In this document: in pieces, positions 51,158 to 62,903 of the stretch
Numbering within the stretch: the first letter of the stretch is position 1
How the letters are laid out: every line of letters begins with the position of its first letter
Sequence record: LC765218.1
Direction: 5' to 3' (one strand)
DNA length: 64,000 nucleotides
Made by a program: the position numbers and the translations under genes
Notes under the pieces: model-generated
What the model was told of the DNA's origin: nothing
The model's input: the letters and a program-made list of their open reading frames with translations, nothing else
The model's database searches: none

Positions 51158-51625
51158 ATGGCAGTAACTCTTAAATTCCCTTTTATGCCGTCTCTTGAGC
51201 CAGCTGAGCTTACGGCTGTCATTCGCGATATCTATCTTGATCAATGCGCGGAGAAAGGCACGACTCCTCATCCCGAAGCATTTGAGCATCAGCCGGTTGT
51301 CCATGTAACGAATATGGTACATGGCGAGGGAGAAGATGTTCACTGGGCAGAAGATAGCGATAGTGAGAATCTACATATCTGCTTTACCTGCCCGCTGACT
51401 GGCGCACTTGCTAAGGTCGTCCAGCCTCTCAATTACACTGCCCCTATGAACAAGGTGTGTGTACGTCTCTGGATTGAGCATATGCTGCTCACCATGTTGG
51501 AACTTTTGCTGTTTACTCAAATGCAAGAACAAATTACAATAATGTCCAATGCAGCAAGCGAACGACGTACTATCATAACCAAATCCATCCATGCAAAGAA
51601 GGAGCAACTCGATGCAGCTCAGTGA
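51158..51625 (+). CDS. Hypothetical protein between the two RNA candidates
   Basis: AGGA RBS before ATG 51158. Confidence 0.7.
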   Translation: MAVTLKFPFMPSLEPAELTAVIRDIYLDQCAEKGTTPHPEAFEHQPVVHVTNMVHGEGEDVHWAEDSDSENLHICFTCPLTGALAKVVQPLNYTAPMNKVCVRLWIEHMLLTMLELLLFTQMQEQITIMSNAASERRTIITKSIHAKKEQLDAAQ

Positions 51626-52142
51626 TCTACGTATCCCCACTGAGATCATTCCTATTGGTCTGTGCTGTCTTTGGGCGCGCGAACAATACGTTGATCCAAA
51701 TGGCAATTATCTATTCACTACCAAAGAGGTTATTAGAGGTATCCATCTGGATAAGATGGTGGAAGAGTTTAATAAAGCTATGCGTGAACATTTCTATCAT
51801 AGCAACCACATCGAGATCACTCTCCATGGTATCGAAATCAAAGATAACAAAGTCCATTACTTTCATCAAGAACCTGCTGTTGAGTTCTATGATAAAGTGA
51901 AAGCACAGTATTGCAACGTTGAGCTGGCTCGTTATGATGCTGACGTAATGGACAAAGACCTGTTCTTTGATATGGTGTCGAAAGAAATCGCTGACCTGAG
52001 TAAGATGATCATGCAGCATATCTACTTTAAGTTTGACCGAGTACAAGCGGAGACCTGGTCTCGTTACCTGCTAGCACGTGGATCTAATAAAAGAAACGGG
52101 GCTGGTCTTGAGTCAGTTGACGTAGAAGTTAAACTCTCGTAA
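51612..52142 (+). CDS. Hypothetical protein between the two RNA candidates
   Basis: AGGAG RBS before ATG 51612. Confidence 0.7.
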   Translation: MQLSDLRIPTEIIPIGLCCLWAREQYVDPNGNYLFTTKEVIRGIHLDKMVEEFNKAMREHFYHSNHIEITLHGIEIKDNKVHYFHQEPAVEFYDKVKAQYCNVELARYDADVMDKDLFFDMVSKEIADLSKMIMQHIYFKFDRVQAETWSRYLLARGSNKRNGAGLESVDVEVKLS

Positions 52143-52145
52143 AAG

Positions 52146-52172
52146 AATACTTGAGTTGTAATGATATACGAG
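52146..52172 (+). promoter_or_regulatory. Stable-RNA-type promoter motif
   Basis: AATACTT-N6-TAAT-N2-TATACGAG; 20/27 identical to the motif before tRNA-Thr. Confidence 0.65.
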
Positions 52173-52500
52173 GACTAATGTCCCAACAGAACAGAGGTCA
52201 CCCGGATCATCTCCCCTAAGGCTCCCCGTCGCCATATTAGGGTGCCGCAGTGACCTCACCTTATTCCCACTAGCTTTCGGTGTAAGTGGGCTCTCTCCGC
52301 ATAAGATCGGAGAGACTAACAGCGATCCATGCCAAAGGATCAAGCCGAAGCAGGTATATTGACTTGGCCGTCTTTATATCTGAAGTTACGACGGTTACTA
52401 CCTCCAGTTGAGAGGGGTATCCCCGAGTGGCGTTACCTAACCAGATGGGTGCCGACCCGTAATCGGTGCCTTAGCTGGCCAGCTTTCTGGTAAGGTAATC
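52170..52500 (+). ncRNA. Candidate ~330-nt structured ncRNA-2, unknown class
   Basis: GC-rich intergenic block with at least eight helices, a tRNA-type upstream motif and a terminator. Confidence 0.7.
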
Positions 52501-52509
52501 TAACGAATA

Positions 52510-52532
52510 GCCCGCTCCGTTGAGGAGCGGGT
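52510..52532 (+). terminator. Stem-loop terminator
   Basis: GCCCGCTCC-GTTGA-GGAGCGGGT-TTTATT. Confidence 0.85.
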
Positions 52533-52571
52533 TTTATTCCGTCTCAGCTTGTAAACAGGAGAATATAAAGA

Positions 52572-53249
52572 ATGACTATTGTCATATGGGATGGTAAGGA
52601 TCTTTTGGTTGATCGAGTTACTACGATCACCCAGAGCGATATCACTGGAGAGGATGGTACACCACAACCATACTACGTGGAACTGGACAAGTCCAAGATC
52701 TATCTTGCTTCTGAGAACAAATGGGAAGCTAAAGTCTGGGGTCGAGCTATAAAAGCATTTACAATGGTTGGTGATACGGAACATCGTCATTGCTGGCTGA
52801 ATTTCTTGGAGACAGGAGATGATGTACATAGTCTAGCAGAGACCGCAAAGAATTTCCAACACCTGCTTACGCCTAATGCCGAATACATCCTCATCGATGA
52901 AGATAATGTTCTTCATGTGTTCGAATCAACCCATGACATGTTTAGGAGCAATTATTATTCCACGCCTGCACGTAAACCAATCATCTTTGGATGCGCTGTA
53001 GCAGTTGAACTGCTGAATAATGTATTCACTTCATCTGAGAACAAACTGAGTCCGTTGGAATGTATGGTTCTAGCGCAAGCGCATTATCCCGTTTTGGGTA
53101 GGCGGTTTGACCACTGGAATGCTGAATCTAATATACTCACACGTGACAACGACCTTAGTGATCGTGCACGTCATTGGGTTGCTAGTCGTGCGGTGAAAAA
53201 GATTTCGGTTAACTCTAAACCACGCCCAGTTAATATCGTAAATAGGTAA
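52572..53249 (+). CDS. Ntn-hydrolase (HslV/proteasome-beta-like) fold protein
   Basis: MTIVIWDGKDLLVDR N-terminus with Thr2; later KSKI and IIFGC segments. Confidence 0.5.
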   Translation: MTIVIWDGKDLLVDRVTTITQSDITGEDGTPQPYYVELDKSKIYLASENKWEAKVWGRAIKAFTMVGDTEHRHCWLNFLETGDDVHSLAETAKNFQHLLTPNAEYILIDEDNVLHVFESTHDMFRSNYYSTPARKPIIFGCAVAVELLNNVFTSSENKLSPLECMVLAQAHYPVLGRRFDHWNAESNILTRDNDLSDRARHWVASRAVKKISVNSKPRPVNIVNR

Positions 53250-57975: not shown

Positions 57976-58053
<78 letters not shown>

Positions 58054-58094
58054 GAAATTTGAATTGAGTACTGGAATCTACATCACTGAATACT

Positions 58095-58121
58095 CTCGTA
58101 TACTATTAGACACGAAGTATT
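58095..58121 (-). promoter_or_regulatory. Stable-RNA-type promoter motif before tRNA-Thr
   Basis: AATACTT-N6-TAAT-N2-TATACGAG on minus strand. Confidence 0.65.
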
Positions 58122-59852: not shown

Positions 59853-59938
59853 TGGTAGGAGCAGAGGGACTCGAACCCACAGTGCCTTACGACGGCTGGA
59901 CCTAAACCAGCTGGCTATACCAATTCGCCTATGCTCCC
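59853..59938 (-). tRNA. tRNA-Leu(TAG)
   Basis: GGGAGCA..GCTGG-TT-TAG-GT-CCAGC, long variable arm, GTTCGAGTC, ACCA. Confidence 0.95.
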
Positions 59939-59963
59939 ATGTAAAATAGCGCTTAACGCTAAT

Positions 59964-59992
59964 TCTTACATATAATCACTATACCAGTATTT
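59964..59992 (-). promoter_or_regulatory. 29-bp conserved element before tRNA-Leu
   Basis: AAATACTGGTATAGT-N5-TATGTAAGA; same as 62875-62903. Confidence 0.75.
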
Positions 59993-61498: not shown

Positions 61499-61500
61499 GG

Positions 61501-61692
61501 TTACCTCTTTACATCCTTTGACATACTGTTATATAGCCCAGTATAAAACGACATAAAACTCTCCTTATCGGAGAGTCGTATATCGGATATCAAAACCAGT
61601 CTCTTTTTGATCATGACATCCATCGTGAGGTGACAGTTAGTGGAACTGAAGAGACACCTTTCCGTATGGTCGGCCCAATCGACTTCCCTCAA
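61501..61692 (-). CDS. Hypothetical protein
   Basis: Packed ORF. Confidence 0.45.
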   Translation of the reverse strand: MREVDWADHTERCLFSSTNCHLTMDVMIKKRLVLISDIRLSDKESFMSFYTGLYNSMSKDVKR

Positions 61693-61998
61693 TCATCGGC
61701 TTACCACTATTAGCCTTTGGTTTCCAGGTGCTATAAATGGTCACATCGAAATACTACAGTCTACTGGGCCTAATGTGAGATGTTTCTACAGGCAGCTTTC
61801 GATGAAGTAACTTTGTTCGTTACATACTGTAACCAACAGAGTATTTTTTTTAATCTAACGTACAGAGTACACCGATTAAACGGAACGGGCAGGTCAAGAC
61901 CCACCAAATAGCTTCAAATACTGCACCAATTATTTCACCAACTACATTGAGGGCTTGTCGCCCTTTATGCTGTTTTTCTTTTTTGACATCGGTCATTA

Positions 61999-62169
61999 TT
62001 AACAAACCATAATTGGTACTTCAAGACCATTGCGTTCACAATGTTCTTCAAGTTTACGTTGAGCTTGGTTGAACTTAGCTAGTTCTTCAAGAGTTTTCTT
62101 TTGGTTATCAGCAAGTTGTTCTGGACTCTGACAATCGCGAATTGCTTTTATAGAAAGATTAGGAATCAT
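61999..62169 (-). CDS. 56-aa hypothetical protein (not in ORF track)
   Basis: MIPNLSIKAIRDCQSPEQL..; follows stop at 62173. Confidence 0.5.
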   Translation of the reverse strand: MIPNLSIKAIRDCQSPEQLADNQKKTLEELAKFNQAQRKLEEHCERNGLEVPIMVC

Positions 62170-62172
62170 AGG

Positions 62173-62771: not shown

Positions 62772-62860
62772 TGGTGGAGAGGACTGGACTCGAACCAGTA
62801 ATGCCCGATACGGACGGCTGATTTACAGTCAGCTGGGGTTACCAATTTTCCTATCTCTCC
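62772..62860 (-). tRNA. tRNA-Tyr(GTA)
   Basis: GGAGAGA..GCTGA-CT-GTA-AA-TCAGC, long variable arm, GTTCGAGTC, ACCA. Confidence 0.95.
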
Positions 62861-62874
62861 GAAATCTGGTATAG

Positions 62875-62903
62875 TCTTACATAGTATTACTATACCAGTA
62901 TTT
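62875..62903 (-). promoter_or_regulatory. 29-bp conserved element before tRNA-Tyr
   Basis: AAATACTGGTATAGT-N5-TATGTAAGA; also within a 10-bp IR (62866-62875/62889-62898). Confidence 0.75.

Follow-up and report, generated by a model that had tools for sequence, protein, structure and literature searches.

The 64,000-nt stretch of DNA analyzed here (the window, whose positions are used for all coordinates without another label) comes from sequence record LC765218.1 and is 100% identical to the Pseudomonas aeruginosa jumbo phage BRkr (LC765218), with window position 51500 corresponding to record position 175500. It contains a 429-bp gap (52143-52571) between two plus-strand open reading frames (ORFs), which raises the question of whether the gap encodes a product and, if so, of what kind. 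In BRkr-type records, the gap is either unannotated or bears short hypothetical coding sequences (CDSs). A first-pass annotation, made from the sequence alone, had described it as a true gap between genes, which is borne out by the flanking plus-strand ORFs ending at 52142 and starting at 52572, and had proposed that it holds a structured RNA. Our analysis leads us to the interpretation, to which we assign a probability of roughly 60%, that the gap is a noncoding RNA (ncRNA) gene of a new family specific to phiKZ-like Pseudomonas jumbo phages, and that its product is a stable, trans-acting RNA with a partner-binding core. The noncoding nature of the locus is itself strongly supported.

Strand, boundaries, and coding potential of the locus

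When folded as a plus-strand RNA, the gap reached -145.9 kcal/mol (z = -4.36 versus dinucleotide shuffles, with 0 of 100 shuffles folding as well), compared to z = -2.58 for the minus strand. Since the G-U pairs, the promoter, the terminator, and these z-scores all agree, the RNA can be placed on the plus strand, the orientation already favored in the first-pass annotation. Its size, previously estimated at ~330 nt, is instead ~370 nt when counted from the probable start (~52168) to the U-tract.

Positions 52146-52169 of the plus strand hold the promoter motif (AATACT, 13 nt, TATAC in the window). As claimed previously, the element upstream of the RNA matches that of tRNA-Thr at 20 of 27 positions. 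A 24-nt pattern derived from four elements, those of the RNA, tRNA-Thr, tRNA-Leu, and tRNA-Tyr, has four exact matches in the 64 kb, one before the RNA and one before each of the three tRNAs, versus 0.04 expected by chance, in line with the proposal that the RNA is transcribed like a tRNA. The tRNA genes (57976-58121, 59853-59991, and 62772-62902, all on the minus strand) are each preceded by the motif, at a distance of 22-45 nt, and followed by a terminator-like hairpin. When up to three mismatches were allowed, only chance-level matches and one near-match at 61822-61845 were added. Across 271 loci, the exact pattern occurred solely before homologues of the RNA, once before a phiKZ tRNA, and once in an uncultured jumbo phage (IMGVR_UViG_3300041411_000080; L106 86-108), at a site remote from the RNA locus.

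In phiKZ, near-matches to the motif precede tRNA-Asp and the 3'UTR_PHIKZ298 RNA. The latter is a northern-validated ncRNA at 270595-270485(-) with a re-annotated 5' end at 270595 (PMC10914365), and this 5' end is the final base of the promoter motif (L012 16596-16619; AF399011 ~270595-270618, minus strand). Given this coincidence, 3'UTR_PHIKZ298 would be a primary transcript from its own promoter and not a product of a 3' untranslated region (UTR). By analogy, transcription of the BRkr RNA would start at ~52168-52170. The 3' end of the motif also resembles the phiKZ late promoter TATG, in which the G is the start (PMC4666361). The tRNA-Leu of 201phi2-1 is assigned to a middle promoter (PMC11512511), and by the same type of reasoning the RNA may be expressed in the middle phase.

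At the 3' end, the U-tailed terminator reported in the first-pass annotation is present as described (52510-52536, plus strand), with a 9-bp G+C stem (52510-52518/52524-52531), the loop GUUGA, and a UUUUA tail. Every lineage has a terminator 3' of the RNA, with a stem sequence that differs between lineages. Thus, the RNA possesses both its own promoter and its own terminator, as would be expected for a stand-alone RNA gene. In PS119XW (L007), the top of the terminator hairpin (window 52519-52523), comprising the loop and adjoining pairs, is the reverse complement of that of BRkr, a small inversion that preserves the hairpin. Terminators at L012 11434-11480 and 18815-18867 and at L009 4767-4819 combine a G+C hairpin with a similar 3' flank (TTTAT, CCGT-like), and because they share this flank, a profile of the RNA 3' end also matches unrelated terminators.

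The plus strand of the gap contains small ORFs of 41 and 54 codons. However, close relatives differ in the lengths of their ORFs in the gap (54, 42, and 39 codons), and no ORF on either strand is common to the lineages. The small-ORF reading was therefore rejected, a 3'-UTR reading was likewise discarded, and the RNA was regarded as noncoding; together with the tRNA-type promoter and the terminator, this upholds the earlier proposal of a noncoding, plus-strand, structured RNA gene. Short hypothetical CDSs are annotated over the RNA in the GenBank records of HPP-Temi (L002 2287-2504), HHBS36_1 (L006 1287-1412), and Viktualia (L009 1586-2036), and the annotated start of 201phi2-1 gp425 falls within the 3' domain and terminator of the RNA (L013 2858-3124); the true start of gp425 is likely the ATG past the terminator.

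To compare the locus with known RNAs, the whole window was searched against Rfam 15 (4227 families) at gathering scores, and only the three tRNAs were detected. A permissive scan of 52050-52650 (E <= 10) returned two weak Thr_leader matches and one toxic small RNA (sRNA) match, all on the terminator hairpin and attributable to terminator noise. ARAGORN found three tRNAs and no transfer-messenger RNA (tmRNA) in the window. The first-pass annotation had been unable to assign the RNA to tmRNA, RNase P, signal recognition particle (SRP), 6S, or intron RNA, and our searches agree. tmRNA is unsupported by either ARAGORN in the window or Rfam at the locus, and no covariance model for RNase P RNA, 6S RNA, or SRP RNA matched the window or the locus. 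For group I and II introns, there is no Rfam match, the flanking ORFs are complete, and the ORFs that precede the RNA in BRkr, PhiPA3, and phiKZ bear no relation to one another. Neither GOLLD, ROOL, OLE, raiA, nor other large ncRNAs matched, as far as these are represented in Rfam 15, and an RsmA/CsrA-type sponge was rejected as well, with GGA motifs appearing by eye to be unenriched in the loops.

An RNA at this locus is also unmentioned in the main texts of the phiKZ and 201phi2-1 transcriptomes, the Grad-seq summary, the antisense-oligomer screen, and a 2026 review. The phiKZ form may be among the 17 unnamed 5'UTR-derived candidates of the supplementary lists. The 201phi2-1 ncRNA screen kept only units < 250 bp (PMC11512511), so the ~475-nt form in that phage would have been excluded. 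The family is thus apparently uncatalogued and undescribed.

The conserved core and its phylogenetic distribution

The family has a 64-nt universal core, hereafter domain 1 (52194-52257, plus strand, as are all RNA features below). It is built of four helices: P1 (52194-52201/52250-52257), P2 (52203-52205/52245-52247), P3 (52214-52219/52237-52242), and P4 (52220-52222/52231-52233). The unpaired AUCUC at 52209-52213 forms the 5' side of an asymmetric internal loop, opposite UG at 52243-52244, the apical loop (52223-52230) holds CCCGUC at 52225-52230, and a single-stranded tail after P1 (52258-52265) contains a near-invariant CCU at 52259-52261. Upstream of domain 1, the minimum free energy (MFE) fold contains a small 5'-terminal hairpin, P0 (52172-52183; GGAC UAAU GUCC), with counterparts in PhiPA3 (GGAA...UUCC, changed on both sides at the same place) and the 201phi2-1 clade (GGAG...CUCC). 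P1 corresponds to the helix GAGGTCAC/GTGACCTC of the first-pass annotation. This helix, as well as CCCTAA/TTAGGG, TCTCTCCG/CGGAGAGA, GATCC/GGATC, and TTACCT-A-ACCAG/CTGGT-A-AGGTAA, is present and supported by comparison between phages, although three other proposed helices are not (see below).

A covariance model, R1, constructed from four sequences and a hand-drawn structure, detected one copy of domain 1 per locus, including in lineages outside its building set. A second model, R3, derived from the R1 matches, detected 22 copies, of which 21 are distinct; each locus holds one, and all are in the gene-sense orientation. Among the 21 distinct sequences, 94.4% of cells are in standard pairs, 17 of the 20 pairs are changed on both sides, and up to five pair types occur at a single pair; a separate count pointed the same way. 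Covariation scored 0.759, versus 0.237 for shuffles (reached in 0 of 500) and at most 0.171 when the pairing is slid by 1-3 columns. Covariation among homologues, named as a check in the first-pass annotation, is therefore strong for the 5' core, and in this respect the family is as well supported as accepted RNA families. The variable hairpins are misplaced in MAFFT alignments, both of domain 1 and of the extension described below, and RNAalifold recovers little from these alignments; covariance models and segment folds were used in their place.

The single-stranded positions behave in the opposite manner to the stems. Counted against the window's own letters in 19 aligned sequences, AUCUC and the opposing UG are identical in 19/19 at each position and CCU in 18/19, 18/19, and 19/19, compared to between 4/19 and 15/19 for the positions of the domain 1 stems. 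CCCGTC was found in 20/20 lineages; in the model alignment it is identical in 16/19, with the other three placed as insertions. A combination of freely varying stems and fixed single strands is typical of an RNA whose shape presents specific letters to a partner, and the 64-nt core with its four invariant single-stranded elements offers a defined object for a partner search.

The distribution of the RNA indicates that it is an independent gene. BRkr has close relatives of the Pawinskivirus type (phiHQ, PS119XW, HHBS36_1, PA1C, phiLBG22, and HPP-Temi). At the DNA level, PhiPA3 matches only the 5' portion of the RNA (52158-52316), and the neighboring protein is only 32% identical. A profile search led to phiKZ, where the RNA lies within the 166 bp that separate gp288 from gp289 (predicted at ~263171 to ~263300 of AF399011), and to Viktualia, whose copy is full-length, and BLAST searches from these two reached 201phi2-1, Phabio, and all phiKZ-type phages. 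With a conserved neighbor, the phiKZ gp287 family, employed as an anchor, 21 loci were recovered from IMG/VR. In every locus with sufficient downstream flank, the RNA lies 1.2-3 kb downstream of the gp287-family gene, and for two loci cut at contig ends, further pieces of these contigs supply the missing part (L021; L106). The RNA thus occurs once per locus and keeps its genome position in phiKZ-like Pseudomonas phages, spanning at least seven genera or lineages that include Phikzvirus, Pawinskivirus, Miltoncavirus, Serwervirus, and Phabiovirus as well as the Psa21, D6, and Viktualia types.

The genes that flank the RNA are not conserved with it. The upstream genes of BRkr, PhiPA3, and phiKZ have no similarity to each other, and at least four unrelated families are represented downstream: a gp289-like gene in BRkr, PhiPA3, and phiKZ; a gp425-like gene in 201phi2-1, Phabio, L032, and L035; a gene for a small hydrophobic protein in several of the short-form lineages; and others in Viktualia and L031. 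Because the flanking genes differ between lineages, the RNA itself, and not its neighbors, is the conserved unit. Its presence in a single copy at the same position, between non-homologous flanking genes, and the restriction of the PhiPA3 match to the RNA indicate that it is an independent gene.

As far as sampled, the RNA is confined to phiKZ-like Pseudomonas phages. The model-positive sequences among the 115 viral stretches listed in a pattern scan of IMG/VR were all on phiKZ-like jumbo contigs, and 0 of the 120 bacterial and archaeal matches listed from 185,579 species genomes scored with the model. Two narrow DNA patterns matched only PhiPA3 in viral contigs, and the gp287 family is represented in GenBank by Pseudomonas phages only (65 records).

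Short forms and the architecture of the long forms

The RNA occurs in two sizes. A short form of ~130 nt is found in phiKZ, T2P, Phabio, D6, Psa21-like phages, and several uncultured lineages; in it, a leader of 15-25 nt separates the promoter from domain 1, and a short A/U-rich linker connects domain 1 to the terminator. A long form of ~350-480 nt is found in the BRkr group, PhiPA3, Viktualia, 201phi2-1, L021, L031, L032, and L035, with an extra 250-350 nt separating domain 1 from the terminator and 12 or more helices in total. The Viktualia/201phi2-1 clade has two additional hairpins ahead of domain 1. To compare the extensions, each of nine long forms was split at four conserved letter blocks and the segments were folded separately, and most of the nine displayed one common helix arrangement.

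The first element of this arrangement is the P5 junction (52273-52351), in which a long-range pairing of 52273-52280 with 52345-52351 would enclose the hairpins P5a (52292-52299/52308-52315) and P5b (52324-52328/52337-52341). Both P5 strands are invariant across the long forms, and the modeled pairing closes two to three hairpins in 9/9 tested. The helix CCCACT/AGTGGG proposed in the first-pass annotation competes with this pairing and is found in the BRkr and PhiPA3 lineages only. P5 is followed by the hairpin P6 (52352-52381), which all long-form lineages form at this position, each with its own stem sequence; another earlier helix, CCGTC/GACGG, clashes with this conserved hairpin and is missing from the other lineages. 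The P7 domain (52384-52432) is closed by 52385-52389 with 52427-52431 and flanked by conserved letters, GAAGUUA at 52382-52388 and GCG at 52430-52432. Its closing helix is present in all lineages, with a fifth pair that is C-G in BRkr, PhiPA3, and 201phi2-1 and U-A in Viktualia, L035, and L031.

The P8 domain (52432-52499) consists of stacked outer helices (52432-52438/52493-52499 and 52440-52445/52486-52491) around the 9-bp hairpin P8a (52447-52455/52463-52471) and the hairpin P8b (52473-52476/52481-52484). P8a, which has compensating changes in HPP-Temi, displaces the third discarded helix, ATGGGT/ACCCGT. It also accounts for a repeat noticed in the first-pass annotation: GGGTGCCG does occur twice and GGTGCC a third time, and copies two and three, which form the opposing strands of P8a, are not kept in HPP-Temi. 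The P8b stem covaries (GCU/AGC in most long forms, ACU/AGU in PhiPA3), and its loop is an invariant, self-complementary GGCC (52477-52480), with TGGCC present in 10/10 aligned long forms.

Comparison of BRkr with HPP-Temi provides further evidence for the extension. Nine pairs differ between the two, eight of them in the P8 domain; three are altered on both sides and six on one side, none is broken, and 11 changes fall in the 146 unpaired positions. In the Viktualia clade, the P8 outer helices and P8b together are 91% paired, a figure that drops to 40% or less after sliding, and four of the pairs have changed on both sides. A P8 covariance model from the BRkr group alone did not reach the other lineages. 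The covariation and fixed unpaired letters of domain 1, the preservation of the changed pairs between BRkr and HPP-Temi, and the shared architecture of the long forms together imply that the structure is under selection.

Possible functions of the RNA and its genomic neighborhood

Nucleus-forming jumbo phages are a main model for phage cell biology and run their own transcription, and their known ncRNA repertoire is a handful of uncharacterized candidates. Among these, the family described here stands out for its presence in at least seven lineages, its covariation, its minimal and elaborate forms on one core, and its tRNA-type promoter. It shares with the phiKZ and 201phi2-1 candidates, such as 3'UTR_PHIKZ298 and the sRNA005 upstream of a tail gene, the order of promoter, short structured RNA, terminator, and gene, but differs from these candidates, known from ONT-cappable-seq and Grad-seq, in sequence and fold, with no homology.

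In the interpretation that we favor, the RNA would be produced in the middle phase by the phage non-virion RNA polymerase as a discrete species, stable like tRNAs, and would act in trans. Domain 1 would serve as a recognition module whose C/U-rich single strands bind a single partner shared by all of the phages or by the Pseudomonas hosts; this partner could be a protein or a G-rich, Shine-Dalgarno (SD)-like segment of RNA. The additional domains of the long forms would be a lineage-specific scaffold, and the self-complementary GGCC loop could pair two copies of the RNA. The C/U-rich loops may resemble an anti-SD sequence, a likeness to be taken as a lead only. Staphylococcal Rsa RNAs are base-pairing sRNAs with C-rich loops that target SD sequences, and the RNA resembles them in presenting unpaired conserved C/U-rich letters on hairpins and, in the short forms, in having an A/U-rich linker and an intrinsic terminator at the 3' end. 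It differs in that its stems are far more constrained than those of typical seed-type sRNAs and in the 12 or more helices of the long forms.

A more ambitious version of this idea, which we consider rather improbable, is that the RNA is a subunit of a phage-specific ribonucleoprotein or self-assembling particle, with domain 1 docking a conserved machine of the phage or host, such as the ribosome, the RNA-degradation machinery, or a defense nuclease, in the service of host take-over or counter-defense. The GGCC loop and the multi-junction body of the long forms would then let copies associate. GOLLD and ROOL are large structured RNAs of phages and prophages, of unknown function and often beside tRNA genes. 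Like them, the RNA is phage-encoded, multi-domain, several hundred nucleotides long, and linked to tRNAs, by promoter type and by a tRNA cluster 5.4 kb away, and its self-complementary loop could allow copies to associate. Unlike them, it has no Rfam match, is smaller, and has a 64-nt core that also occurs alone as an RNA of ~130 nt. If this version were true, the family would be a jumbo-phage counterpart of these orphan large RNAs.

Several observations weigh against a trans-acting RNA gene specific to these phages. Every lineage has an SD sequence and an ORF 10-40 nt past the terminator, which leaves no space for a promoter, so transcripts of the RNA must at times continue past the terminator. 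No conserved complement to the invariant loops was found inside the RNA, and we infer the discreteness and stability of the RNA in BRkr. P5 and the GGCC loop are predicted elements, since their invariance means that they carry no covariation. The distribution beyond phiKZ-like phages was sampled, among the matches listed. Lastly, the alignment of domain 1 was fitted to the model, which biases it toward the structure, although the covariation effect and the variety of pairs are far beyond this bias.

The necessity of read-through leads to the main rival explanation, that the RNA is a cis-acting leader governing read-through of its own terminator into the downstream operon, either by antitermination of the polymerase or via a phage protein. 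The put RNAs of phage HK022 are processive antitermination RNA elements, and the RNA resembles them in being a structured RNA right past a promoter, ahead of terminators and an operon. This likeness is one of layout only, as the RNA is present in one copy per locus, its long forms are far larger, and the polymerase is a non-canonical phage enzyme. We regard a leader as a serious if somewhat unlikely possibility. The order of promoter, domain 1, terminator, SD sequence, and ORF in all lineages, with no space for a second promoter, the position of domain 1 ~15-25 nt from the presumed start in the short forms and BRkr, and the location of the RNA at the head of the final plus-strand operon that precedes the convergently oriented tRNA and structural block are all consistent with it, as are the many short 5' transcripts with early terminators, for which antitermination is suggested in the transcriptome reports (PMC10914365; for 201phi2-1, PMC11512511). 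However, tRNA-Tyr has the same layout, with an SD sequence and ATG ~25 nt past its terminator, indicating that this is how RNA genes are packed in these genomes and that the layout alone implies no cis-regulation. A single copy per locus, despite the many terminators in these genomes, also argues against a leader, as do the 250-350 nt of conserved structure that the long forms place before the terminator and the two extra hairpins between the start and domain 1 in the Viktualia clade. Moreover, domain 1 and the terminator coexist in 10 of 11 MFE folds of short forms, and pairing of the terminator arm with domain 1 was no better than for shuffled arms, in a crude and thus weak test with three lineages cleanly extracted. 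A terminator switch is further disfavored by terminator stems that vary freely between lineages.

A related explanation, that domain 1 is a metabolite or ion riboswitch aptamer with the terminator as its expression platform, appears very unlikely. Domain 1 does have the features of a conserved aptamer, a 64-nt hairpin with covarying stems and invariant letters in its internal and apical loops, and in the short forms the terminator and gene follow 10-15 nt past it. What is missing is a coherent set of regulated genes, given the gp289-like, gp425-like, small hydrophobic, and other families downstream; additionally, no Rfam riboswitch matched, the crude test above found no alternative pairing of aptamer and terminator, and more than 250 nt separate domain 1 from the terminator in the long forms. 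That the region has no functional RNA at all is hardly credible. The 41- and 54-codon ORFs and the short CDSs in some GenBank records could be taken to favor it, but the ORFs are unconserved, a split gene is contradicted by lineage-variable flanking ORFs that are complete, with their own stop or start, and by the absence of a match to Rfam intron models, and the region has its own promoter motif and substitutions that preserve base pairs.

Among the genes around the RNA, the downstream neighbor in BRkr (52572-53249, plus strand) encodes a 225-aa protein of the phiKZ gp289 family; it lies outside the RNA, beginning 36 nt past the terminator, and has its own SD sequence. Pfam and PHROGs searches with six neighboring proteins gave nothing informative, and the 'putative phage integrase' label of PhiPA3 gp354 (L001 2600-3004, 134 aa) is supported by neither. 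Single-sequence structure prediction for the gp287-like conserved neighbor gave an unusable model (pLDDT 32.5).

The promoter class described here could be used to find further RNA genes in these genomes. Its sole other near-match in the window (61822-61845, two mismatches) lies in an ORF-poor gap of ~670 bp on the minus strand (61499-62172). Downstream of this motif, a 323-nt segment with a folding z-score of -3.44 contains a terminator-like hairpin, and the stretch is conserved only among BRkr-type phages, at 82-93% identity. A possible RNA at ~61550-61821(-) may represent a second ncRNA gene.

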